IMG/VR virus record: IMGVR_UViG_3300045970_000794
Location: 298,103 to 362,102 of that record
DNA length: 64,000 nucleotides
Reading direction: 5' to 3' (one strand)
Below are positions 12,543-58,642 of the stretch, piece by piece; position 1 is the stretch's first letter; each line of letters begins with the position of its first letter. Position numbers and translations under genes: made by a program. The notes below the pieces were generated by a model, which was given only the letters and a program-made list of their open reading frames with translations, had not been told where the DNA came from and searched no databases.

Positions 12543-13460
12543 TTAAATTTTATTATTTCTTACTGAATCTTTTATTTCGATATAAATGGTTGATGCCATT
12601 GGATATTTCTTCGTGACATCAAGTTTGATTTGCTCAATAGTATCTTCAATATCATAAGCTACTTCATCATCTTCAATATCCAATGATAATAATAACATGA
12701 ACTGGTTTTTACCTATGAACATTGTTTGAATCTTATTGATATGTTTTACCATATGATATTGCCCGATAATATGTTTAATATCATTTCTTATTTCCCTCGG
12801 GGCACTCTCACCAATAATTAACTTTCTGAGCTCATTAGAGAGCGTATAAGCGATTATCATCAGAATTAGACCTACAACTATGGAACCGATTGCATCGAAC
12901 ACTGGAGAGACTGTAACAGCTAAAATTGTGGTGATGGCTACAACGATTAATCCGAATAATGCAACCATATCTTCTAGGATAATAACCAATAGGTTTGTAT
13001 CACTAGTATCAATGATTTTACGGAAGAATGAATCCTTACTGATTGTTTTGAATTGATTATAAGCAACTCTGAATGAGTTGAACTCTAAAATGATACCAAT
13101 ACCAAGAACGATGAAGGACCAATAAACATGATGTATTGGTTCTGGCTTTGATAGTTTTTCAATTCCCTCATAAAGCGAATAGAATCCACCAACAAAGAAT
13201 AATAGTATTGCTACCATGAATCCCCAGAAATATTCTTCCTTACCATAACCGAATGAATGTAGTTCGGTTGGAGCTTTAGATGTTCTTTTATTACCAATCA
13301 ACAAGAACACTTGATTGCAACAATCAGCTGTTGAGTGAATGGCTTCGGCCAACATAGCAGTACTAGTAGTAACGACAGCTACAACGAATTTTATGGCTGC
13401 GATGATTGCATTACCAATAAGTGCGACCATAACGGCCTTCATTGAATTAGGTTTAGACAT
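12543..13460 (-). CDS. cation diffusion facilitator (CDF) family transporter
   Basis: AMLAEAIHSTAD, HSFGYGKEEY, ILED, FDAIGS; 6 TM segments plus C-terminal domain. Confidence 0.9.
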   Translation of the reverse strand: MSKPNSMKAVMVALIGNAIIAAIKFVVAVVTTSTAMLAEAIHSTADCCNQVFLLIGNKRTSKAPTELHSFGYGKEEYFWGFMVAILLFFVGGFYSLYEGIEKLSKPEPIHHVYWSFIVLGIGIILEFNSFRVAYNQFKTISKDSFFRKIIDTSDTNLLVIILEDMVALFGLIVVAITTILAVTVSPVFDAIGSIVVGLILMIIAYTLSNELRKLIIGESAPREIRNDIKHIIGQYHMVKHINKIQTMFIGKNQFMLLLSLDIEDDEVAYDIEDTIEQIKLDVTKKYPMASTIYIEIKDSVRNNKI

Positions 13461-13764: not shown

Positions 13765-14102
13765 TATCTATATATTTTTCTAGTTTGACTATTAATACAT
13801 TTTGGGTTGATGCATTTGTATTCACCGAATATCCCTAGGAATCCGCTACGAACAACTGATGAGCCACATCTAATACAACATTTAGTACTACCTTCACGTT
13901 CCATTCTACTTAATGGTGGTTGTGGTGGTGGAGGTGCAACAATAAATGGTTTAATAACAATTGGTGTCTCTTGTGCCAGTTCTTTTTCAGCTGATTCAAT
14001 ATGTGCGCATAATGCGTAATACCCATTACATTTGGTACTGAAATCGCTTTGAATTTGAAAAGCGAACTGAATGAATTTTAGTGTTTCTAGGTGTAGTTTC
14101 AT
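13764..14102 (-). CDS. hypothetical protein with C-terminal zinc ribbon
   Basis: CIRC...CINPKC. Confidence 0.6.
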   Translation of the reverse strand: MKLHLETLKFIQFAFQIQSDFSTKCNGYYALCAHIESAEKELAQETPIVIKPFIVAPPPPQPPLSRMEREGSTKCCIRCGSSVVRSGFLGIFGEYKCINPKCINSQTRKIYR

Positions 14103-14285
14103 AATATTAGAGTAAAATTAATGAGTAAATGGTCCACATACTTAGTGATTGATAAATTAGTATTGTCCACATATGCTTCTTTATAAAATTATCATTATCC
14201 CCATATAGCATGAAGAGGCCATAAATCCAGCCAACTAACGGTATCAAATAGATTAATTTATTCATTTTATTTAGATTTTTAGTTA

Positions 14286-14615
14286 TTACTTTCTTGGAAT
14301 ATACTCACAATATGAGGTGTGTATACCATTGACACAACCACAATATTTACAATGGGTTTCAGCTTCAACCTCTTTAATAACATCGAATATTGTTAATTGA
14401 TTAGTTGGTTCTTCAGTGTTCTTTTTACAAGTACAATCACTGAATTTAAAGCTTTTAACCAAATTAACTTCACCGCCATTTAATACGTGTTCACTTAGGT
14501 TTTCCTTCCAGATAGTATCAGTATAACAATCTGGCTCACGACATGCGGCAAATGTTGCCCCACAATGACATTTCATTACTTGAATTCGATTCATGTTAAA
14601 GCTTTTTGTAGTCAT
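14286..14615 (-). CDS. Cys-rich hypothetical protein
   Basis: 109-aa ORF with several CxC/CxxC. Confidence 0.55.
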   Translation of the reverse strand: MTTKSFNMNRIQVMKCHCGATFAACREPDCYTDTIWKENLSEHVLNGGEVNLVKSFKFSDCTCKKNTEEPTNQLTIFDVIKEVEAETHCKYCGCVNGIHTSYCEYIPRK

Positions 14616-14796
14616 TTATACCAGTGACCATGAAGTATATCCCAAATAATATAGTTATGACCCATCTATGGGGTTCAACTGTTACATCAGTATTAAGTGT
14701 ACTATATATATATATACGCACCTAGTGTGATACATGATAAGCATCCTAGAAGGATTGAGCCTATTGCAAATATTTTATCTCTCATAATTTATTTAT

Positions 14797-15000
14797 TTAT
14801 TGAAGTTTACCTTTACAAATAACCATATCCAATTCATAGTTAGGTGGAAATTCACCTCGCCAATCACCATCAACGTTATGTTGACCTATATCAAAGCGAA
14901 CTGAATCGGCTATGATACCTTTGATTCTAAGATGGTCTTTAATTATATCAGAAATTTCTTCTGGAGTTAATCTAACTGTTATTTCTTTTTCGATTTCCAT
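14797..15000 (-). CDS. hypothetical protein
   Basis: 67-aa ORF. Confidence 0.55.
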   Translation of the reverse strand: MEIEKEITVRLTPEEISDIIKDHLRIKGIIADSVRFDIGQHNVDGDWRGEFPPNYELDMVICKGKLQ

Positions 15001-15035
15001 GACTATTTTGCTATTGATGTGTCTTTATCTTTAAG

Positions 15036-15218
15036 TTAAAAGATTTTGTTTTTAATATCACTTATAACATATAAAACAAGGCCAATGGCCATAGCAATTA
15101 AGAATATGACTGACTTAGTGTAGAAAATTTCAAAGTCATTGGCGTTAGCATTAACTAATGCTTGGATATAAAACCCAATAAAGAATGCCATTATGAATTT
15201 TGCGATATGTCTTAACAT
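15036..15218 (-). CDS. small membrane protein
   Basis: Two TM segments; follows promoter at 15241. Confidence 0.55.
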   Translation of the reverse strand: MLRHIAKFIMAFFIGFYIQALVNANANDFEIFYTKSVIFLIAMAIGLVLYVISDIKNKIF

Positions 15219-15289
15219 GATTTTAAGTATTAATTTGATGCAAAGATAATACAAATATTTTTAATAACCAAATTTTTTGTGAATTATTT

Positions 15290-15472
15290 TTAAAATGGTA
15301 ATATTTCTTTTGATTGTTCTTTTTCGTATTCCTTTTTGAATCGTTCAAATTCAGCATCAAATCCATTTCTAATAATGACAGCTGGATTGAAATTCTTAGT
15401 TTTCAACCAAGCAATTTTTCCCATTTGCTCAGCTGAAAACCTAATTGATTGAACTTGAGATTTTTGTTTCAT
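15290..15472 (-). CDS. putative ribbon-helix-helix DNA-binding protein at head of cassette array
   Basis: VQSIRFS (strand) + helix + NPAVIIR helix pattern. Confidence 0.5.
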   Translation of the reverse strand: MKQKSQVQSIRFSAEQMGKIAWLKTKNFNPAVIIRNGFDAEFERFKKEYEKEQSKEILPF

Positions 15473-15516
15473 ATTTGTAATACAATTATAACAGCAATAA
15501 GTAAGTTAGTGAGCAT

Positions 15517-15780
15517 TTAAGCATCACTATATTTAATAAACATAGTATCCATGAATTTTTTAACATCATTTAATTCACCTTGATAACATCTTCCCATACC
15601 ACAAATCGTATAAATTGGAAATTCGTTATCTTTTACATTTTCAAATATATTCAAGTTATGCTCTATTACAATCTTATAATCCCTATATGTTTCAATTTCT
15701 TCAATTTTCCCTTTAACAAAACGCTCACTAACATCGTGTATAGCACATTGCTGTTCATTTTTCAAATTATCTTTTTCCAT
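15517..15780 (-). CDS. cassette 1 hypothetical protein
   Basis: Starts inside site 1 (QCAIHDVS encoded by the arm). Confidence 0.7.
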   Translation of the reverse strand: MEKDNLKNEQQCAIHDVSERFVKGKIEEIETYRDYKIVIEHNLNIFENVKDNEFPIYTICGMGRCYQGELNDVKKFMDTMFIKYSDA

Positions 15781-15843
15781 ATTATTAAATTTAGTATTTC
15801 AAATTAAGTTCTCGTTGGCAACGTGCTATACACGCAGCCGTTA
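15729..15843 (+). repeat. attC-like site 1
   Basis: TAAC-at-CGTGTATAGCACATTGC ... GCAACGTGCTATACACG-cagcc-GTTA. Confidence 0.85.
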
Positions 15844-15851
15844 TGTTTAAT

Positions 15852-16016
15852 TTAATTTTTTAACCGCAATTTATCTCCCACCCATTCAAGTTCTATCATT
15901 TCATCATGTTTTCCCTTGTTAATAATATCCAGTGCTGTATCAACATCAGATAAATTGCTAACTACTTTCACCATTTCATCAAGAGTCATACATTTTAACA
16001 TTTCAAGTTTTTCCAT
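15852..16016 (-). CDS. cassette 2 hypothetical protein (54 aa, not in ORF track)
   Basis: MEKLEMLKC...GDKLRLKN*; fills the cassette. Confidence 0.6.
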   Translation of the reverse strand: MEKLEMLKCMTLDEMVKVVSNLSDVDTALDIINKGKHDEMIELEWVGDKLRLKN

Positions 16017-16047
16017 AAGTTTATCTATTAAAAATTAAACTAAAACA

Positions 16048-16160
16048 TAACAACAAATATAAGTTATTATTTTCAGTGTTCCAAATTAAATTATCTGTTT
16101 ATTTATACGTTTGTTTTTTAATTAAGTTTCAGTTATAACAACTTATATTTGCAACCGTTA
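16048..16160 (+). repeat. attC-like site 2
   Basis: TAAC-aa-CAAATATAAGTTATTAT ... ATAACAACTTATATTTG-caacc-GTTA. Confidence 0.85.
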
Positions 16161-16196
16161 GCAGCTATTAAAACAGTACGCTCGTTCCTCGCCTGC

Positions 16197-16457
16197 TAAC
16201 ATCGAATAAGAAAAATAAAAATTACTACTGTTGTGGTTCATCGAGTGGTGGTGGTTTTAAATACCATTTTCCGTTATCATCAACAAAAAAACTTTCAGGC
16301 TTCATCTGTTCATATCCCCAAGAACAAAAACCTTTGCAGTTTTTATTTTCGCATACATTATTAAATTCTCCCCATTCCTGTCCACACAATACACATATAA
16401 GTTTTTTTTCGTGTTCCATATACCGTAATTTTTACATTTTCTTATTCGCAGCCGTTA
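16197..16457 (+). repeat. attC-like site 3 (loop contains a whole gene)
   Basis: TAAC-at-CGAATAAGAAAAATAAAAATTAC ... GTAATTTTTACATTTTCTTATTCG-cagcc-GTTA. Confidence 0.8.
16225..16419 (-). CDS. small zinc-finger-like protein nested in site 3
   Basis: CVLC...CENKNC. Confidence 0.65.
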   Translation of the reverse strand: MEHEKKLICVLCGQEWGEFNNVCENKNCKGFCSWGYEQMKPESFFVDDNGKWYLKPPPLDEPQQ

Positions 16458-16670
16458 GGCGTAATTAAAAGTAATCCTAACTTTAGCCTTAAATTCTCTA
16501 TATCCGTTTTCGTTTTCAATAGTCATTTCTTGTAATATGTCCTGAATGAATATCAGTGCATCATCTGTTATTTCAGTTCCTTTAGGGTAAGTCTTTGAAT
16601 AACTACGCCTAACACCACCTATATTTAATTGCTGGCTATCTGCGTTATTAAAGGTCTGTTCGTTGTTCAT
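16455..16670 (-). CDS. cassette 4 hypothetical protein
   Basis: Starts in site 4 loop (QLNIGGVR); its stop TAA is the TTA of the cassette's GTTA. Confidence 0.7.
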   Translation of the reverse strand: MNNEQTFNNADSQQLNIGGVRRSYSKTYPKGTEITDDALIFIQDILQEMTIENENGYREFKAKVRITFNYA

Positions 16671-16734
16671 AATTTCGTGTAATTTGATAGTTTAGTATTT
16701 CAAAATCAGCAACTAAACATAGCTGTAACCGTTA
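16610..16734 (+). repeat. attC-like site 4
   Basis: TAAC-ac-CACCTATATTTAATTGCTG ... CAGCAACTAAACATAGCTG-taacc-GTTA. Confidence 0.85.
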
Positions 16735-16741
16735 GCAACAA

Positions 16742-16951
16742 TTAGTGCTGCCCATACCTCAAATGAATGTTATCATAATCTGTATCGTGATAAGCACCGT
16801 TCTCTTGTTTATGTTTCTTTATACATTGATATAAGTATATTTCGGTTAATCCTACCAAAGAACAATCACCTTTATCCCAACTATTATACAGTTGTTTAAT
16901 CTCATCATCGTTCAAATCTAATAAACTTTCTATTGTGTTCTTTTCATCCAT
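16742..16951 (-). CDS. cassette 5 hypothetical protein
   Basis: ATG at 16951 (MDEKNT). Confidence 0.6.
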   Translation of the reverse strand: MDEKNTIESLLDLNDDEIKQLYNSWDKGDCSLVGLTEIYLYQCIKKHKQENGAYHDTDYDNIHLRYGQH

Positions 16952-16966
16952 AAATCTAACTGTTGC

Positions 16967-17052
16967 TAACAAGCAATATATGTAATTGCCTATTAAGGTT
17001 TGTAAAATTTTTAAATTTTGTGCAAGGCAACTACATATATTGCCAACCGTTA
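16967..17052 (+). repeat. attC-like site 5
   Basis: TAAC-aa-GCAATATATGTAATTGCC ... GGCAACTACATATATTGC-caacc-GTTA. Confidence 0.85.
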
Positions 17053-17059
17053 GGTTCAA

Positions 17060-17353
17060 TTAAATTATTGTTTTGATTTTATTTAGATAATCAATATATC
17101 GAGAAGATGAACCGCTACCATACAATTTTTCAGCTTTCTCAGACATACCATATAAAGATATTAAAAAATAATCACCATATTCAGATGCTTTGTTCCTAAA
17201 TCCCCACATTTCATGTTGTCTTATCTGAAATTCATCTTCAGTGAGGTTATCCATATCAATAAATAATTTATCGTATGCTTCCCAAAATTGTGTCATCACA
17301 ATTCTAACTTCTTCTTTTAATTCTTGTGAAGTTGTTTGTTCTCTTATATTCAT
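17060..17353 (-). CDS. cassette 6 hypothetical protein
   Basis: 97-aa ORF filling the cassette. Confidence 0.7.
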   Translation of the reverse strand: MNIREQTTSQELKEEVRIVMTQFWEAYDKLFIDMDNLTEDEFQIRQHEMWGFRNKASEYGDYFLISLYGMSEKAEKLYGSGSSSRYIDYLNKIKTII

Positions 17354-17389
17354 ATTTTTTAATTTGTAAAATAATTATTTAACTAAACC

Positions 17390-17437
17390 TAACAAATGAT
17401 AAACAACATTAAAACGATTGTTTATCATCGGACGTTA
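17390..17437 (+). repeat. attC-like site 6 (minimal, 48 bp)
   Basis: TAAC-aa-ATGATAAACAA-cattaaaacga-TTGTTTATCAT-cggac-GTTA. Confidence 0.8.
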
Positions 17438-17458
17438 TGGCTCATTAAAACGAAGCCA

Positions 17459-17950
17459 TAACAGCAAATATAACCAATGCTGTCAGTGCTTCGATTTAAG
17501 TTTTGCGATTAAAAGTTTTTAAAAATTGCCATCGCACTTAAAAAGTTTCAAGTATTTTTCCTGTTGGTTCAACAAAATCAATTACACTTGTTTCACCATT
17601 TTCTTTTTCTACACCTATTTGCCCAGTTAACCTAGAATTAATAGTTTCAAATTTATGCAATTCGCATCTAAAAGAAAATGTATCTTTTAACTTGGTTTGC
17701 AACTCAACATTCCAACCGTCATTGGATTGGTCAAACAAATGGTTCAATGCAAATTCTTTAACAATCAATTTAACCATTTTCATTCTTAATGATTTTTTAC
17801 TTTTTACTTTCATACTTTTAATTTTAAATTTATATAAATATAATGTTTTTATTTAAGATAATCAATATTTTCTCACGCTATTTTTAAAAACTTTTTTGCG
17901 GTGTTTCAATTAAGCATTAGTGTTAGCACTGGTTATATTTGCAGCCGTTA
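17459..17950 (+). repeat. attC-like site 7 (loop contains a whole gene and an inner 16-bp inverted repeat)
   Basis: TAAC-ag-CAAATATAACCAATGCT ... AGCACTGGTTATATTTG-cagcc-GTTA. Confidence 0.8.
17538..17813 (-). CDS. hypothetical protein nested in site 7
   Basis: 91-aa ORF. Confidence 0.65.
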   Translation of the reverse strand: MKVKSKKSLRMKMVKLIVKEFALNHLFDQSNDGWNVELQTKLKDTFSFRCELHKFETINSRLTGQIGVEKENGETSVIDFVEPTGKILETF

Positions 17951-17953
17951 TGG

Positions 17954-18223
17954 TTAATTACCAATTCCAGCTTTGCATTTTGGACATTTAATATAACTAT
18001 CATGATTGTATCCGCAAAATGAACACTTACGTAATGGTAACTCAACCATAACATTAGATAAATCCAATTTTTTGATGTCATTAATTAAGCACAAAACTTC
18101 GTCTGCCCTTATATTATACGTTAGTGCATGGATATAATTATTTGCTTCGCTATTTATTTTTTCGTTATCTTTATAGTCACGAAGTTTTTTTTCCAATTCA
18201 TTAATTATTTAGTCTTTTTTCAT
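17954..18223 (-). pseudogene. cassette 8 gene with C-terminal zinc ribbon; in-frame TAA at codon 5
   Basis: ATG AAA AAA GAC TAA ATA ATT AAT GAA TTG...; could alternatively initiate at TTG 18196. Confidence 0.5.
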
Positions 18224-18261
18224 ATAATTCATTTTAAACTGTATTTATCTGAGTACCGTTA
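18049..18261 (+). repeat. attC-like site 8 (degenerate arms)
   Basis: TAAC-at-TAGATAAATCCAATTT ... AAACTGTATTTATCTG-agtacc-GTTA. Confidence 0.7.
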
Positions 18262-18543
18262 GTGGCAATTTTCTATGAACAGTCTAAACTTCTTACCATC
18301 TTTGGAAATAAATTCGATTGAGTTAGTATTTTGTTGTAAATTATCGTCTAACTCTTTTTGCTGTTGCATTTCTATTATAATTTTTCCGTAATCATGAATT
18401 GTCGCACATTCTTGTGGCTCATCGTTATCGAATTTAAACATAAGCCTTCCAGTTTGGTTAGCAAGTTTAAAACTGCCACTAACATCAGCTATATTCAATG
18501 CCGAGTTCTGTGGCGTAATTGAGTTTTGTTCTTCGTTTTTCAT
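18259..18543 (-). CDS. cassette 9 hypothetical protein
   Basis: Starts in site 9 loop (ALNIADVS); stop within GTTA. Confidence 0.7.
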   Translation of the reverse strand: MKNEEQNSITPQNSALNIADVSGSFKLANQTGRLMFKFDNDEPQECATIHDYGKIIIEMQQQKELDDNLQQNTNSIEFISKDGKKFRLFIENCH

Positions 18544-18603
18544 TTTATCTGTTTATTAAATTTTGAAATACAAAATTGGCACTAAATATAGCTGTAAACA
18601 TTA
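18480..18603 (+). repeat. attC-like site 9 (core G replaced by A)
   Basis: TAAC-at-CAGCTATATTCAATGCC ... GGCACTAAATATAGCTG-taaac-ATTA. Confidence 0.8.
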
Positions 18604-19575
18604 TACCCCATTTAAGAGCGACCCGAAAATGTGAGCGATTATATCAACAGTCCATCCGTTTCCGAGCATTTTTTTTGATTGGCTTTCTGAAACAATATCA
18701 GTAAAGTAATTTTCGGGAACTGTTTGTAATCTGCAATACTCTTTCAAAGTGTAATATCTAAATGGTAGCTTGTTTTTAAAAGCGTCCTTATGCCTACCTA
18801 TTGGCATTGTAGTTAAAACATTGTCTTTTTCAACAGTAGTTAGGCAGTTGCTTTTATTAGTGTTAGTTGCTCTTACTTCCAAGCATTGCGTAATCGGTAC
18901 ATCTTTGTTGTAGTCATCTCTTACACCTCGCTCATTCAATCTTCTACCTAAAATAGTAGCTTTATTCAACCTTCGCCCTCTTATTGCACTTGGGTTAATA
19001 AAATCGTCAGTTTCAAGTATATCAATAAGGTTTATTGCTTTGTCGGTTGGCTGTGTAATTTCAAAGTTTGCCCAATACAAACGAACCCTATTTTGTGCAG
19101 TAACTAAGCTACTGTTAATCGCAACAGGTTCAACCCCTAAATACTCGCTAATTACTTGCTCATATTCTTTTTTCATTACTACATTTTCAAGTAACCAGTA
19201 TTTAGGTTTCAATTCTTTAACCAATCTAACAAACTCAAAAAATAGTTTGCTTCGAGGGTCATCAAAGTTTAACTGTTTGCCACTAAAACTAAATCCTTGG
19301 CATGGGCTACCTCCAATCAATAAATCAACTTTAGGTAAGTCTTTTGCAAATACTTTAGTTACATCGCCTAATTGTATTGTTTTCGGGTAGTTGGTTTGTG
19401 TTACTTTAATAGCGTGTTTATCAATCTCACTCGCAAAGTAGTTATCATATTCAATCCCAACTCTATTAAGTGCTATTTGTCCACAACTCATTCCATCAAA
19501 AAGAGAAAGAACAGAAGAAAAACGGGGCATAACACCGTGTATAGGTAATGTGGGGTTTTGTGGTAATTCAATCAT
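18601..19575 (-). CDS. dcm: DNA (cytosine-5)-methyltransferase (cassette 10)
   Basis: LSLFDGM, EID, GGSPCQGFS, LENV, QNRVR, LGNGW motifs. Confidence 0.92.
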   Translation of the reverse strand: MIELPQNPTLPIHGVMPRFSSVLSLFDGMSCGQIALNRVGIEYDNYFASEIDKHAIKVTQTNYPKTIQLGDVTKVFAKDLPKVDLLIGGSPCQGFSFSGKQLNFDDPRSKLFFEFVRLVKELKPKYWLLENVVMKKEYEQVISEYLGVEPVAINSSLVTAQNRVRLYWANFEITQPTDKAINLIDILETDDFINPSAIRGRRLNKATILGRRLNERGVRDDYNKDVPITQCLEVRATNTNKSNCLTTVEKDNVLTTMPIGRHKDAFKNKLPFRYYTLKEYCRLQTVPENYFTDIVSESQSKKMLGNGWTVDIIAHIFGSLLNGV

Positions 19576-19653
19576 TTGTTCTCGTATTTAAGTTATTACT
19601 ATTTTGACAGGGTAGTGCTTCGTATTCCCACACTACCCATACACGAAACGTTA
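19530..19653 (+). repeat. attC-like site 10
   Basis: TAAC-ac-CGTGTATAGGTAATGTGGG ... CCCACACTACCCATACACG-aaac-GTTA. Confidence 0.85.
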
Positions 19654-19664
19654 TAAGTAATTTA

Positions 19665-19946
19665 CTAAATGTTTGGATGATTAGTAAAACATTTATTGCA
19701 TTGTTGATTATTTCTACTTATTTGAATTAATTCACCACCACAATCACATTTATTAAACATACTTATAACAGTAGGTATATTCAAATTTTTAACTCGTTCT
19801 TGTTCGTATTTAATACCTTCATCAAATGCTTCCAAAAACCAACCAAACCATTCGTCTTTAGCCATTTCACCACGCATATCTTTTGTTGGTAAATCGTCAA
19901 TTATCTTATTAATTATTTTATTTTTATCCATTTTAATTTCCTCCAT
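19665..19946 (-). CDS. cassette 11 protein with C-terminal zinc ribbon
   Basis: NLNIPTVI motif across half-site at 19766; CDCGG...CNKC. Confidence 0.65.
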   Translation of the reverse strand: MEEIKMDKNKIINKIIDDLPTKDMRGEMAKDEWFGWFLEAFDEGIKYEQERVKNLNIPTVISMFNKCDCGGELIQISRNNQQCNKCFTNHPNI

Positions 19947-22900
19947 TGTTAAGTAATGATTTTATGCCCTCATCTTTTAAAAGTAAGAGCATAATATCTA
20001 ATTCATTTTCTGTTATTGTTTCTTCGTCAAGTTCTGCTAATGACAAATACAATCTACGTTTTAAATCTAAAATTTCATCCATGTTAAATATCACCTTTAA
20101 GCCACAATTTATAATCATCTTCTGTCATTCCCAAATATGCTGATAAACTTAAAGTACTATCAGAATTATGCCATTCATCAATCTTATCATCAATGGTATC
20201 ACCAATGGTTTTAACATATTTAATTTTTAGATTCATTTCAATGGTGTGTTCTACCTGAGTAATCGCCCAGTCAATTTTATCAACATCCATTTGGTCAACA
20301 GCATCATTAATTGGTAAATCCAAATAATAATTAGAATACATTCTTTTAAACATTAAATGCTGCTCTTCAGTGCATTTAGCTAGAAGGTCTTTTAGAATAG
20401 TCTTAGCAGCTTTTATTAAAGTTTCGTTTTTCATATTATTTAAATAAAAGATTAAATAAATAATAGACTGGAGTTAGGAATGCGGGTGTTACATACAACC
20501 ACAATAAAACAGATACCCACCCTTCTTTATTGAATTTATACCTATCAAAAATATTAATATTTTTATTTTCGTCTTCTAGTGCCCACATAATTACGAAGCA
20601 ACTAACTACTAATGTATATCCCCACATATTATTTTATATTAAATTATTAAATATCATTTTCATCATCAATCACCCACCACATGAAACCACAGGCCAATCC
20701 AATTACCACTACTTGTATAAAAATTTCCATCATTATTTTATATTAACCAAAGTTTGTTAAAGTAATATATCTGATTATCAGTCAGATTCTTAACCCATTC
20801 ATCAAAATAGATATGATACTTAATCGAATTGTTTTCATACCATTCATATCTCAAATATTGATATAGCCTATCATTCATACTAATACAAATCAAAATCATC
20901 ACCAACAATTATCCACCATAGGACAATCAATACACCCATAAACATCATTAATTCCATGAGTTAAACTGTATTAATATTAAATTTAATAAGAATTACCATC
21001 TTCAACCAATCGTAAAACATTTCATCAGTGAACGATGCAGTCTTATCATCATTAGTTCTATAAACCGATTGACCATTTACTCTATAGAATAGGTCATAAT
21101 AGATTTTTAGAGTAACACCATCTTTACTGAAAACAACGTTGTTGAACTCACCGTCAGTTGGTGAATACGCTATACCGTATTTCTCTAAGGTAGTAACCAA
21201 TTTATTTATTGTATGCTCAAGTTTAGTAATTGGTGCCATTTTTATATATAATAAAGGTGAATATATTGTTTTTTATATGTTACCATTCCACTGCTATAGT
21301 GATGAAAATGAAATTCTCTAGTTATATCATCCTTATAAAGTTGATATGCGTAATCGACATCCATTAATTCTTTAGTTCCCATAATAAGATTAAATTAATT
21401 TCTACAAAGATAATACAAATAAGTTAATAAAACAAATTTTCTATCAAATATTTTTCATCTAAAATTTTGCGTGGGATTCCATGGCAGTCTAACCAATAAT
21501 GTATGATAATGTCAGTGAAGGGACTAATATTCCCAAACTCACCTTGCATTCTTCCATTTTTATCTGGAACCCTACCCATAAGTTGGTCATCTGTTAGTAA
21601 ATTCTTACGTTCTTCCCACGTCAATTCTCTATAATAATCCTCTTCATTCACTGAACTTATGACTTAACCTCAAATAAATCTTCGATATCATCATCATAAA
21701 TCCAATTAAGGGCTTCTTCAGCTCCACGATAGATAAGGTTATCTTCATCCATTTCTTCCCAATCACCTTCATTAATGTCCTCAAGGTTAGTTGAACCATC
21801 AAGAATTGATATCTTAGCATCAATGATTAAATGGTTAGGGTTACGAAATGTACTATACTCTGGTAGCCAAGTTTTCATGGCGGTTAAGCCATCAATTTGT
21901 CTTTGAATTGCTGCTTCTGTTCTCATTTTTGAAACGTTTATTAATAATACTTAAAACTTTATATAATATGAACAATACTAAAACTGAATCTACTATTGGC
22001 CATAAAATTGATAATATAATATAAGGTGTGACTCCATCGTCTTCATAATCATCTACATCGTAAGTGCTTTTAGCATTACTATTACCAATATTAATACTCC
22101 TAATAACCATTAGGAATATAAAGGTAACTACGAACCCGATAATATATGTTACTATGTATGTCATCACTCATTTAATTCTTCAATTATTGTATATTGTACT
22201 GGCGTTGATAATTCGATTTTATAACCATTAGTATTTCCACCATCGAATGTGTAAATGTTATCATAAAATAAATATGCGCCATCATCGATTTTGCAATCAT
22301 CACAATTAATTATTTCATCAAAAAGAAACCAACTGGTAGCACCACCAGTTAGCATTACTCTAACACGAAAAATCTTCTTTCTTCGATTCAAATATTCCGT
22401 TCGGAAGAAACCATTCATTACATGGGATTTGATTTGGTCAGCAGTTAAGCTTTCCTCACGATTTTCGGAACGATATAAACCATCATCACCTTTAAGCCAT
22501 AGTGAATCCCCATTCCTAGTTTTTGTAATGTCACGATATCCTATTTTATCCATATTTCCCATAATTTAATATTTTTATTATAATTTTTTCCAAGTAGAAT
22601 CTGGAATTTCATCTGGTTTTCTAAGATTATTGATAATTCCAACTTTACCATTATCCAATTCAAACCAAATAAATTTATTTTCTATGAATATACGAACAAT
22701 TTTATTAACGCCACTATCATATCCATATGAATATGTTCCACCCCATTCTATAGTATCACCAACACATATTTTACCATAAACAATGTGATTAGCTTCATTA
22801 ATACTATCTATACCCATTATTTTCCAATCTAATTTATCTTTCATAATTAAATTTTTACCAAACAAACCAAATAAAATACAAAGGTCCACCTATTACCATC

Positions 22901-37344: not shown

Positions 37345-38439
37345 ATGATAACTAAAACACAAAATTTCATATTAAAAGCAAAGCATATTCATGAAGATAA
37401 GTACGATTATTCATTAGTTGAGTATAATGGTTCTTATTACAAAGTTAGTATAATATGTAAAATACATGGAATATTTAAGCAATCACCAAATAATCATTTA
37501 AATGGGCAAGGCTGTGCTATTTGTGGTCGAATTAAAACACAAGCTAAACAAATGTCTAATGTTAATGATGTTATAGCTAAAGCAAAATATATTCATAAAA
37601 ATAAATATGATTATTCATTAGTTCAATATAAAAATGAAAAAAGTAAAATAAAAATAATATGCCCAACGCATGGTATTTTTGAACAAACACCTGATAATCA
37701 TATTAATAATAAAACTGGGTGTCCAAGTTGTAGTTGTAATAAAAAATTAACACCATTAGAGTATATTACAAAAGTAAATTTAATTCATAAATCCAAATAT
37801 AATTATTTAATTATGAATTATTGTGGTGTGAATAAGAAAATAAAAATAATATGCCCAATTCATGGTGTGTTTGAAATTAAAGCCTCTCACCACGCTAGCG
37901 GTGTTGGTTGCTCTAAATGTTCAAATAAACATAAATATACTACCAATGAATTTATCATTGAGGCTAGTAAAATTCATGGAAGTAAATATAGTTATAAATT
38001 GTCTGAGTATTTAAATGCGAAAACTAAAATAATTATTACTTGTCCAATGCATGGTGATTTCATGCAATCACCAACATCACATTTAAGTGGTAAAGGATGT
38101 CCAACATGTAATGAAAGTAAAGGTGAAAAAGCGATTAGAAATTACTTAAATAAACATAATATTAGCTTTATTCCTCAACATAAATTTAATGATTGTAAAA
38201 ATATTAAACCATTGCCGTTTGATTTCTATCTTCCAGATTATAATACATGCATTGAATACCAAGGTGAACAACATTATAGACCAATTAAACGTTTTGGTGG
38301 TGTTAATGCTCATGAAAAATTAAAAGAAAACGATAACATTAAAAAAGAATACTGCGAATCACACAATATTCTTTTGATTGTCATATCAAATATAAATGAA
38401 GTGATTTATAATTTAAAAAAATTAATCATAAAACCGTAG
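37345..38439 (+). CDS. putative homing endonuclease: DUF723-like zinc repeats + PD-(D/E)xK/Vsr-like nuclease domain
   Basis: Repeats of YDYS..Y...K..IIC..HG.F.Q.P..H..G.GC..C; FDFYLP...IEYQGEQH. Confidence 0.8.
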   Translation: MITKTQNFILKAKHIHEDKYDYSLVEYNGSYYKVSIICKIHGIFKQSPNNHLNGQGCAICGRIKTQAKQMSNVNDVIAKAKYIHKNKYDYSLVQYKNEKSKIKIICPTHGIFEQTPDNHINNKTGCPSCSCNKKLTPLEYITKVNLIHKSKYNYLIMNYCGVNKKIKIICPIHGVFEIKASHHASGVGCSKCSNKHKYTTNEFIIEASKIHGSKYSYKLSEYLNAKTKIIITCPMHGDFMQSPTSHLSGKGCPTCNESKGEKAIRNYLNKHNISFIPQHKFNDCKNIKPLPFDFYLPDYNTCIEYQGEQHYRPIKRFGGVNAHEKLKENDNIKKEYCESHNILLIVISNINEVIYNLKKLIIKP

Positions 38440-39714: not shown

Positions 39715-39976
<262 letters not shown>

Positions 39977-55308: not shown

Positions 55309-56177
55309 GTAAAAAATTAACAATTGATGAGATAATTAATAAAATTATTGATAATGATTACGATTTTTCACAATCAAATTATGTATCATTAGATAAAAAA
55401 ATAATCGTAATTGATATTGACGGGTTTGAGCATTTAATAAGACCAGATAGTTTATTAGTTGGAAATAAATTAAATATTAAAAGTGTTATCAATAAAGAAA
55501 ATTATTTAATTAAAAAATTTAATAAAATTCACAAAAATTTATTTGATTATTCTAAATTCACATATATAAATTCTGACACTAAAATTGATATCATATGTCA
55601 GACCCACGGTATTTTTAAACAAACTATTAATAATCATTTAAGAGGTAAAGGATGTCCTAAATGTAATGGTAAAAATAAAAGTAATAATGATATTATCAAT
55701 GAGTTTAAATCAACTCATGGTAATAAATACAATTATTCAAAAGTAACATATAGTGGGATTAAAAATAAAGTAATTATTATATGTCCAAAACATGGTGAAT
55801 TTAAACAATCACCAGAGGAACATATTAAAGGTTGTGGATGTCCAATCTGTAAAGAATCTAATGGTGAACGTAAAATTAGGTTATTTTTAGAATCAAATAA
55901 TGTTTCATATATACCACAACATAAATTTAATGATTGTAAAAATATATTAAGTTTACCATTTGACTTCTATTTACCTGATTATAATACATGTATCGAATAT
56001 CAAGGTGAACAGCATTATAGACCTATCGAATATTTTGGTGGTATTAAACAATTCAATAAACAAATAATTAATGATAAAATAAAAATGGAATATTGCCAAA
56101 ACAACAATATTCCATTAATAATGATTAAATATGGTGAAAACATATTTGAAACATTAAAAAAATTTTCTAATATTTAA
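55305..56177 (+). CDS. putative homing endonuclease (DUF723-like repeats + nuclease domain)
   Basis: Same architecture as 37345-38439. Confidence 0.8.
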   Translation: MSKKLTIDEIINKIIDNDYDFSQSNYVSLDKKIIVIDIDGFEHLIRPDSLLVGNKLNIKSVINKENYLIKKFNKIHKNLFDYSKFTYINSDTKIDIICQTHGIFKQTINNHLRGKGCPKCNGKNKSNNDIINEFKSTHGNKYNYSKVTYSGIKNKVIIICPKHGEFKQSPEEHIKGCGCPICKESNGERKIRLFLESNNVSYIPQHKFNDCKNILSLPFDFYLPDYNTCIEYQGEQHYRPIEYFGGIKQFNKQIINDKIKMEYCQNNNIPLIMIKYGENIFETLKKFSNI

Positions 56178-57742: not shown

Positions 57743-58642
57743 TTAATTTTTTTTTAAAAGACTTATTATTTTATTAGGAATCTCATTATATTTAATTATA
57801 ATTAGATTTATATTATTTTTATCACAATATTTTTTTTTAATCACATCATTTAATTTAACATCAATTAAATACTTTTCACCACCAAAAAATTCAATTGGCT
57901 TATAATGTTGAATTCCGTTAAATTCGATGCATGTATTATAATCTGGTAAATAAAAATCAAATGGTAATGGTAGTTTATTTCTACATTCATTAAATTTATG
58001 TTGCGGAATGAATTTGATATTATTTTCCAATAATAGTAGTCGAATATTATTTTCACCTTTACTTTCTTTACAGATTGGACAACCAACACCTTTCAAATGA
58101 TTATGGGGCGTTTGGATAAATTCACCATGTTTAGGGCAAATAATTGTTATTTTGACATGTGATGTTATGTACTTAATTTTAGAATAGTCATATATTTCAC
58201 CATGAATTAACTTAGCTTTTTCAATAAAACACTTATTACCAACCCTTCTATTAAGAAAAGTACATTTTTCACAACGGCTACCTTTTAAATGATTATTTGG
58301 GGTTTGTTCAAACTCACCATGGGTGGGACATATTATTTTAATATTAGTGTTAAAATTAATATAATTAACCAATGAGTAATCATATTCATCACCATGAATT
58401 AACTTAGCTTTTTCGATAAAACACTTATTACCTAATCTCTGTTTTACATAACTACATTTTTTACATCCATCACCACTTAAATGAGCACTAGCCCTTTGAT
58501 TAAATATACCATGCTCTTTGCAAATAATATTCACATAATTTTTACTTTCAGTATAATTAACTAATGAATAATCATATTTTTCACCATGAATTAACTTAGC
58601 TTTTTCTATAAACTTTAAATTTTTTTCTAACATACTTACCAT
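57743..58642 (-). CDS. putative homing endonuclease (DUF723-like repeats + nuclease domain)
   Basis: FIEKAKLIHG..YDYS x3; FDFYLP...IEFNG.QH. Confidence 0.8.
   Translation of the reverse strand: MVSMLEKNLKFIEKAKLIHGEKYDYSLVNYTESKNYVNIICKEHGIFNQRASAHLSGDGCKKCSYVKQRLGNKCFIEKAKLIHGDEYDYSLVNYINFNTNIKIICPTHGEFEQTPNNHLKGSRCEKCTFLNRRVGNKCFIEKAKLIHGEIYDYSKIKYITSHVKITIICPKHGEFIQTPHNHLKGVGCPICKESKGENNIRLLLLENNIKFIPQHKFNECRNKLPLPFDFYLPDYNTCIEFNGIQHYKPIEFFGGEKYLIDVKLNDVIKKKYCDKNNINLIIIKYNEIPNKIISLLKKN

Follow-up and report, generated by a model that had tools for sequence, protein, structure and literature searches.

An integron-like cassette array in a jumbo phage and the small ribbon-helix-helix-like gene at its head

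What kind of site is position 15505 of this DNA, where a row of small cassettes meets a minus-strand gene for a protein of 60 amino acids (aa): an entry point of a recombination array, analogous to the attI site of integrons, or merely the place where an old array ends? The DNA analyzed here, referred to as the window, is a stretch of 64,000 nucleotides (nt) that makes up the final 64 kb of the 362,102-bp virus record IMGVR_UViG_3300045970_000794. The record has direct terminal repeats and is rated complete, and its source is a jumbo phage with a G+C content of about 30% and nearly all of its genes on the minus strand. The explanation that we favor, and consider fairly probable as a whole, is that an integron-like array occupies this locus and that 15505 is the fixed head of a platform that carries a gene for a ribbon-helix-helix (RHH)-like protein and lacks a recombinase gene. 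Positions are those of the window unless the genome or another locus is named.

The array head at 15505 and the gene beside it

The string GTTAGTGAGCAT begins at 15505, and the ATG of the minus-strand open reading frame (ORF) 15290..15472 lies at 15472. The head region consists of the following features.

15290..15472, minus strand: gene for the 60-aa protein, a predicted RHH-like homodimer from a family of 58-63-aa proteins beside array heads
15475..15485: palindrome TTGTA-A-TACAA before the ATG (family consensus TTTGTA-W-TACAAA), a candidate operator
15473..15504: head spacer of 32 nt from the ATG of the gene to the first junction, homologous across the family (alignment A3)
15505..15516, plus strand: G|TTA of the first junction, with the R arm (GTTA-N5-MAT) that opens cassette 1; no hairpin unit to its left

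Further junctions follow to the right of the head, with their G at 15840, 16157, 16454, 16731, 17049, 17434, 17947, 18258, 18600 and 19650 (at 18600 the junction is degenerate, ATTA replacing GTTA). The left flank of all these ten junctions has one layout: TAAC (the R'' box), 1-2 nt, an L'' arm, a loop, an L' arm and 4-5 nt ending in C. The initial annotation had noticed that the first GTTA, at 15505, lacks such an upstream arm, and this was confirmed by two arm scans, which found nothing of the left-flank hairpin layout there, and by covariance model R1, which was built from 42 units of other phages and contains no window sequence. Run with filters off over 14000-20600, R1 gave no unit left of 15576 (best E-value (E) 3.2), and eight units within the array (E 3e-17 to 2e-3). 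The E-values of the models are rough, and the relatives are metagenomic or unannotated contigs. The 32-nt spacing between this junction and the 60-aa gene was also correct, the string quoted for it being only 31 nt long (15474-15504).

If the small gene belongs to the array, as had been suggested, its homologues should consistently abut such arrays, and this is what we found. A word-based search with the 60-aa protein gave one homologue (66% identical) and one scan of viral contigs gave none; by exhaustive profile search we obtained eight small homologues of 43-63 aa, seven of which are full-length (58-63 aa). Upstream DNA is available for nine lineages (the window and eight homologue lineages), and in 9/9 a junction precedes the gene at a distance of ~31 nt, with a proper R arm beyond it. 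This junction reads TAAC in seven of the nine, CAAC in L085 and a degenerate TAAT in L079. It is followed by ~17 nt, by the palindrome TTTGTA-W-TACAAA and directly by the ATG, which in L079 and L086 lies 12-14 nt further. R1 units were found upstream wherever more than ~500 nt was available (L003, L004, L077/78, L082, L084; E 7e-10 to 9e-4). The downstream neighbours vary by lineage (SNF2 helicase, glucosaminidase-like protein, DUF6567, small ORFs). Since the gene stays linked to the junction while the genes downstream change, it moves together with the array head, independently of any backbone neighbours.

The position at which related heads stop resembling each other points the same way. In three lineages, each represented by two contigs, the DNA on the gene side is 96% (L003/L004), 82% (L080/L081) and 91% (L082/L083) identical, and it becomes unrelated (~25-30%) exactly from the TAAC junction, indicating that cassette content changes at the head. 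The proposal that 15505 is the primary insertion site is therefore supported as far as a probable entry point is concerned, since three lineages break at the junction, and fails on the word primary: it is not the only head, a second array being present elsewhere in the genome. The further proposal that the small gene sits where intI lies in an integron agrees with its geometry, which matches that of the recombinase gene at other phage arrays (see below).

Heads were scored with a position-weight matrix derived from the heads that lie next to those recombinase genes, and were compared with all GTT sites in the genome. With this matrix the heads of L086, L085, L084 and L004 rank in the top 0.04-0.2% of GTT sites, where genuine recombinase-proximal heads also fall; the scores of internal junctions are far lower than those of heads. 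Because four RHH-linked heads score within that range, the RHH-linked head family is related to the recombinase-proximal site, with the window copy as a diverged member.

If the array were an old one that merely ends at 15505, the 60-aa gene would be a chance neighbour in the backbone and no recombination would occur at the head. The lack of variation at 15505 in the phage's own population, the weak likeness of the window head to recombinase-proximal heads, and one relative in which the stop of the gene overlaps the start of the SNF2 helicase gene, as backbone genes might, would all agree with such a passive boundary. We nevertheless regard it as unlikely, because the module of junction, head and gene recurs in nine lineages with differing downstream neighbours, homology ends exactly at the junction in three lineages, and several heads of the family score within the recombinase-proximal range.

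Cassettes and their folding strand

The array spans 15505-19650, possibly to ~19950, with 10 or 11 cassettes, listed here from the head outwards (E refers to the hairpin unit unless another match is named).

15506..15840, plus strand: cassette 1; ORF 15517..15780 (minus), its ATG within the loop; R'' end 15732; L'' 15735-15751; L' 18-nt arm 15818-15834; E 3.6e-8
15841..16157, plus strand: cassette 2; ORF 15852..16016 (minus); R'' end 16051; L'' 16054-16070; L' 16135-16151; E 1.8e-6
16158..16454, plus strand: cassette 3; R'' end 16200; ORF 16225..16419 (minus) within the loop between L'' (16203-16221) and L' (16430-16448)
16455..16731, plus strand: cassette 4; ORF 16455..16670 (minus), ATG in the loop; R'' end 16613; E 4.7e-9
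16732..17049, plus strand: cassette 5; ORF 16742..16951 (minus); R'' end 16970; L'' 16973-16991; L' 17025-17043; E 3.2e-16
17050..17434, plus strand: cassette 6; ORF 17060..17353 (minus); short unit 17382-17445; E 1.3e-4
17435..17947, plus strand: cassette 7; R'' end 17462; ORF 17538..17813 (minus) within the L''-L' loop
17948..18258, plus strand: cassette 8; ORF 17954..18196 (minus); R'' end 18052; weakest L stem
18259..18600, plus strand: cassette 9; ORF 18259..18543 (minus); R'' end 18483; L'' 18486-18507; L' 18573-18594; E 1.6e-7; degenerate outer junction (ATTA instead of GTTA)
18601..19650, plus strand: cassette 10; C-5 cytosine DNA methyltransferase 18601..19575 (minus; PF00145, E 6e-41), ATG in the loop; R'' end 19533; unit E 3.2e-9
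19651..19950, plus strand: partial cassette 11; starts with GTTATAAGTAAT; ORF 19665..19946 (minus); R'' 19762-19769 and an L''-like arm

For partial cassette 11 no L' arm was found, and the far end of the array is frayed. All cassette ORFs lie on the minus strand and point at the head, and neighbouring cassettes are unrelated in sequence. We take 15505 as the proximal end because the head-first reading keeps every ORF in one cassette, whereas the reverse reading cuts four ORFs.

Each R'' pairs with the start of its own cassette, not with the neighbouring arm: the mean agreement is 6.1 of 8 variable positions for own starts versus 2.6 of 8 for the starts of other cassettes, and none of 100,000 permutations reached the observed own-start sum. 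This is the pattern predicted when circular cassettes are cut at the G|TT of their own site, and it is the hallmark of integron arrays.

The units are also homologous to those of other phages. The R1 alignment contains compensatory changes in 16 of 25 base pairs, and R1 detects seven units in the window (E 3e-16 to 1e-4), each of them within the array and on the minus strand; three units were missed because their loops hold a whole ORF and are too long for the model. The folding strand is strongly biased: at the non-Watson-Crick positions of 123 units, G.T wobbles number 203 on the bottom (minus) strand versus 5 on the top strand (11 versus 1 in the window), and the best window unit scores 89 bits on the minus strand versus 34 bits on the plus strand with R1. 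Bottom-strand hairpins also have a one-sided 3-4-nt bulge beside the TAAC/GTTA stem, which may or may not correspond to the extrahelical bases of attC sites.

Some of these wobbles are fixed in the stem (columns 13/96, 18/95, 26/87 and 31/82 of alignment A2; 40/42 sequences at 31/82), with the G always in the 5' arm of the bottom strand. The conserved wobbles could enforce the choice of strand or serve as recognition marks.

Homology also breaks at junctions in other metagenomes, for which the evidence is assembled contigs and not reads. One contig of a freshwater metagenome resembles the methylase cassette at ~91% identity; its homology begins precisely at 18601, and a different unit lies to the left. 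Likewise, the unit 19531-19653 has matches in contigs of two metagenomes, which diverge immediately behind the GTTA at 19650 (breaks at 19650-19654).

The folding strand is at the same time the coding strand, on which the G.T wobbles would be G.U pairs, and several start codons lie inside loops; hence the hairpins might be RNA elements, i.e. mRNA terminators, processing sites or translation gates, in an array that grew by duplication instead of site-specific recombination. We think this quite improbable, because the partner of each R'' is the start of its own cassette, 30 to 1000 nt away, and not the arm beside it, because G|TT is the exact point at which homology is lost in other metagenomes and at heads, because arrays adjoin a tyrosine recombinase gene in 48 loci, and because neighbouring cassettes are unrelated in sequence.

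Regarding shorter elements, the 12-mer GTTATAAGTAAT is shared by the tails of both arrays and some recombinase-proximal heads of other phages. The tail copies may be the displaced right half of an original head site, although in the window GTTATAAGTAAT begins a further partial cassette. The remaining ACCGTTAG sites of the genome do not represent units; they are located within tRNA or coding sequence. Only some units carry a Bacteroidota-type -7 box in the L arm, which was therefore rejected as a general feature.

A XerA-like recombinase and the second array of the genome

The PF00589 domain has no match anywhere in the genome. Neither a serine recombinase nor a Y1 (IS200/IS605-type) transposase was found there, and the idea of other hairpin-acting enzymes was dropped on this ground. 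The second array lies near the other end of the genome.

L001 3083-4779 (genome 15083-16779): second array, two cassettes; junction G at 15486, 15851 and 16768; units E 1e-17 and 3e-13 (R1)

Its head is 52 nt from the ATG of a 116-aa ORF, which corresponds to the SAM-like domain found at the N terminus of tyrosine recombinases (PF13495, E 1.4e-9); of a recombinase, only residues 1-114 are left. The ORF matches residues 1-112 of full-length relatives at 71% identity and then their last nine residues, indicating that the whole catalytic domain was lost in frame. In this genome, which lacks the catalytic domain of the enzyme, the cassettes of the window array are probably immobile except when a co-infecting relative provides the enzyme in trans.

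Relatives of the recombinase were found in 63 viral contigs, about 50 of which have a full-length gene of ~266 aa. The full-length proteins combine PF13495 and PF00589, the SAM-like and catalytic domains of Xer-type recombinases, and align end to end with the archaeal P. abyssi XerA (4a8e, E 3e-40), with HxLRHS and TTxIYTH visible. On the XerA model NF040815 they score 184 bits versus a cut-off of 220, and on the integron-integrase model TIGR02249 146 bits, in two stretches, versus a cut-off of 265. The alignment with the Vibrio integron integrase VchIntIA (2a3v) is also in two pieces, skipping ~48 aa between residues 176 and 264, which is the site of the IntI-specific segment. By its score on the XerA model the phage recombinase is a relative and not an equivalog.

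A conserved head (..ATATAT..TA|GTTA) lies ~51-52 nt from the recombinase ATG, and long arrays follow it. Upstream of the recombinase genes R1 gave 219 distinct matches, which are distributed over 48 of the 63 loci and without exception have the recombinase-sense orientation; the loci without matches mostly have almost no upstream DNA. Ten cultured isolates of Polaribacter phage Freya carry a 38%-identical recombinase, and near-identical isolates (loci L075 and L076: Freya_10 and Freya_1; MT732472 and MT732463) differ by 0-10 small co-oriented ORFs with hairpin units upstream of the recombinase gene. The Freya paper takes the integrase only as a sign of temperate life (PMC8776804). Because the closest cultured carriers of this type of recombinase infect Polaribacter and Cellulophaga, a flavobacterial host for the present phage is a reasonable guess, and no more.

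Phage sites of this general kind have been treated as parts of bacterial integrons. In Qi et al. 2023, integron parts and 17 integrase-less attC clusters are described in phages, including a Polaribacter phage and methylase cassettes, and IntI1 is reported to use some phage sites (PMC9892861). Section 3.4 of that paper and term searches of its full text gave no phage Xer-like recombinase at array heads; 'Xer' is absent from it, and the small gene was not searched for. No published account of such a phage array system was found in the literature searched, which was limited to one library.

The window array might accordingly be a captured bacterial CALIN (cluster of attC sites lacking an integron integrase), taken from the host and serviced, if at all, by a host IntI, with no phage system involved. 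The window holds ten units in series, as called with R1, and no recombinase, which may or may not qualify as a CALIN. CALINs are known in virulent phages, some phage attC sites are recombined by IntI1 (PMC9892861), and the genome encodes no active recombinase. A capture is very improbable in our view, as homologous units lie beside phage-encoded XerA-like recombinases in dozens of phage contigs, and also in cultured phages of flavobacteria with the 38%-identical recombinase, every ORF has the orientation opposite to that in classical cassettes, and a remnant of the XerA-like recombinase is kept beside the second array.

Several other features of the genome were observed. At 0.5-0.8 kb past the tail of the second array (L001 5259-6255) there are two small ORFs that look RHH-like and a homing endonuclease of the GIY-YIG/NUMOD3 type; the one of these ORFs that was compared with the 60-aa protein (L001 5450..5605) was rejected as its kin (hhalign probability 1%). 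The ORF of the first cassette of the second array (L001 3501-3710, minus) has a weak Hint-domain-like match (PF07591, E 0.013). In the window, a gene for a CDF-family cation-efflux transporter occupies 12543-13460 on the minus strand (PF01545, E 2e-39), and a run of TTA repeats of ~50 nt occupies 39727-39780. Tandem periodicity of 186-204 nt within long ORFs (58069-58642, 37368-38064 and 55508-55805) suggests proteins of repeated modules with Cys/His-rich motifs.

The predicted dimer, a possible mechanism and its meaning

The 60-aa protein had been called RHH-like, with structure prediction proposed as a check. AlphaFold2 models of it (predicted local-distance scores (pLDDT) 81-82) consist of extended residues 1-13 and two helices. 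A Foldseek search with the first model gave no match, a wider structure search gave only noise (Z 4.1 or less), and the profile compared with PDB sequences gave E 0.27 or worse; with a model from nine sequences, the best PDB chains in Foldseek were nearly all RHH proteins (ParD2, TacA1, the DNA-binding domain of CopA-SO, RelB, Arc and CdbA). Language-model neighbours, which serve as leads only, belong to RHH_1, RHH_3, RHH_5, NikA-like and DUF3950 clusters. The homodimer model has an interface score (ipSAE) of 0.73 versus 0.02 for the best control, a mark reached by 21 of 30 proteins solved as one-chain pairs and by none of 23 solved as single chains. The homodimer runs share 96% or more of their contacts, the partner has a pLDDT of 82 or higher, and the contacts between the chains, residue 10 with residue 8 and second helix with second helix, are those of an RHH-type dimer. 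The models support homodimer pairing of the 60-aa protein and back the proposed fold, each piece of evidence being weak alone for a protein of 60 residues.

The palindrome before the gene is intact in 10 of 12 aligned sequences and in seven of the nine lineages, with one mismatch in L082/L083 and in L085, while the proteins of the family are only 37-68% identical. Its 11-mer core has only 3 copies in the genome versus 1.1 expected, so that its conservation in the family is specific. The simplest reading of this pattern is that the palindrome would be the operator of the RHH-like dimer. It was also considered as a general phage promoter, which was dropped: one-mismatch matches in relatives precede unrelated genes, and the phage's own genome has the 3 copies. 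A role unrelated to the array, in which the protein would regulate a neighbouring gene in the way of antitoxin-like or plasmid-type RHH regulators, would agree with RHH antitoxins (ParD, TacA, RelB) being the best fold neighbours, but is the least probable of the alternatives, since no downstream partner is conserved (helicase, glucosaminidase-like protein, DUF6567, small ORFs) and the conserved partner is the upstream junction with the palindrome.

From this anatomy we infer the chemistry at G|TT, activity at the head at 15505, and DNA binding and a role of the small protein, in the following manner. Each cassette consists of TTA-N5-MAT, a minus-strand ORF, ATK-N5-TAAC (R''), a gap of 1-2 nt, L'', loop, L' and a further 4-5 nt before the G, and the bottom strand of each unit would fold into a long hairpin. 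A Xer-like recombinase would then exchange strands at G|TT, either between two folded units or between a folded unit and the double-stranded head, and by such exchanges cassettes would enter, leave and be reordered. In this scheme 15505, where the R arm of cassette 1 meets non-cassette DNA, would be the fixed proximal end and the partner site. Junction, head, palindrome and small gene make up one module that remains linked to arrays while the downstream neighbours change, which argues for a second kind of platform that has no recombinase gene and whose head is the analogue of attI. The RHH dimer would most likely bind the palindrome before its own start codon; bound there, it could repress its own gene and stop transcription leaving the array. 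Such control of read-through by the dimer is conceivable because all cassette ORFs point towards the small gene. The protein may also mark or shape the head for the recombinase.

Several findings weigh against this explanation. The 60-aa protein has nothing significant in Pfam, NCBIfam or PHROGs and matches no curated RHH family, and the scores of its fold neighbours are low (Z up to 4.7, root-mean-square deviation 2.2 A over 47 residues), low Z being expected because only 45 residues are involved. The window head ranks only in the top 6.6% of the GTT sites of the genome, a weak match to the consensus, and assembled contigs from the population of this phage gave no sign of recombination at 15505. 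The folding strand is the mRNA strand, so that the hairpins could act as RNA, and the recombinase lacks the segment by which IntI reads folded attC sites, which makes its use of hairpins only putative. Finally, the small gene is absent from the 63 recombinase loci and from ten large recombinase-bearing records, and recombinase-linked arrays do not need it; its absence there identifies it as the mark of a distinct type of platform, as opposed to an accessory common to such arrays.

Integrons are regarded as bacterial devices built around IntI. The phage array shares with them the G|TT cassette bounds, the AAC/GTT triplets that frame an imperfect hairpin, R'' boxes that pair with their own cassette start, a strong bias to one folding strand, a fixed array end beside a tyrosine recombinase gene, and cargo that is mostly orphan ORFs plus a DNA methylase. 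It differs in its recombinase (266 aa, XerA-like, lacking ~48 aa at the IntI-specific segment), in its ORFs, which lie on the folding strand and are directed to the head, so that no Pc-type promoter at the head can drive them, and in its R and L boxes, which are split by a one-sided 3-4-nt bulge and not by a central bubble. Further differences are the G.T wobbles at fixed stem positions, the ORFs inside some hairpin loops, and the head at 15505, which carries an RHH-like gene and not intI. As in attC sites, an L''/L' hairpin is enclosed by R'' and R' boxes, and R'' is the complement of the start of its cassette, whereas an IntI-type integrase and a head promoter driving the cassettes are lacking; for this reason the array is integron-like, a variant and not a member of the integrons.

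Other known systems share single elements with the array. Xer recombinases act on dif and on attP of the CTX phage, a hairpin folded from a single strand. The likeness extends to the arm at the crossover (~11 bp), where TTA-N5-MAT resembles a dif arm; in the present phages, unlike Xer/CTX, there are many-cassette arrays, the enzyme is phage-encoded and no dif-like host site is apparent. PeSL cassettes of T4-type phages are small accessory genes that are shuffled and flanked by stem-loops. The PeSLs are promoter-plus-stem-loop repeats, thought to act via homologous recombination, and lack a junction logic based on G|TT, pairing with an own start and a tyrosine recombinase next to them. With RHH regulators (Arc, CopG, ParD, the N-terminal part of RelB) the 60-aa protein shares a predicted strand-helix-helix, an intertwined ribbon dimer and a palindrome before its own gene; it differs in having no significant sequence match to any RHH family. 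To our knowledge, constant linkage to a recombination-array junction is not known for any RHH regulator.

Taken together, the same cassette logic is seen in phages both large and small, where the recombinase is a different and simpler one and the cassettes are inverted, and a second kind of array head is marked by a small RHH-type gene. A further-reaching possibility, which we put forward only tentatively, is that phages of flavobacteria-like hosts run an integron-type system of their own with two platforms, one with the recombinase gene at its head and the other with a dedicated RHH protein; the compact XerA-like recombinase would act on bulged bottom-strand hairpins, and the RHH protein would bind the palindrome and license or shape the double-stranded head for the entry of cassettes, giving an attI defined by a protein. 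The only cassette with a recognisable function encodes an orphan DNA methylase, a typical anti-restriction gene. An active system of this kind would account for a rapid exchange of accessory genes by these phages, and it would bear on the long-standing question of how recombination of folded DNA by IntI-type enzymes arose from Xer-type enzymes. Compact, structure-specific recombination sites would also be useful as tools, and the cultured Polaribacter phages (Freya), whose isolates differ in the array region, make the question testable at the bench.
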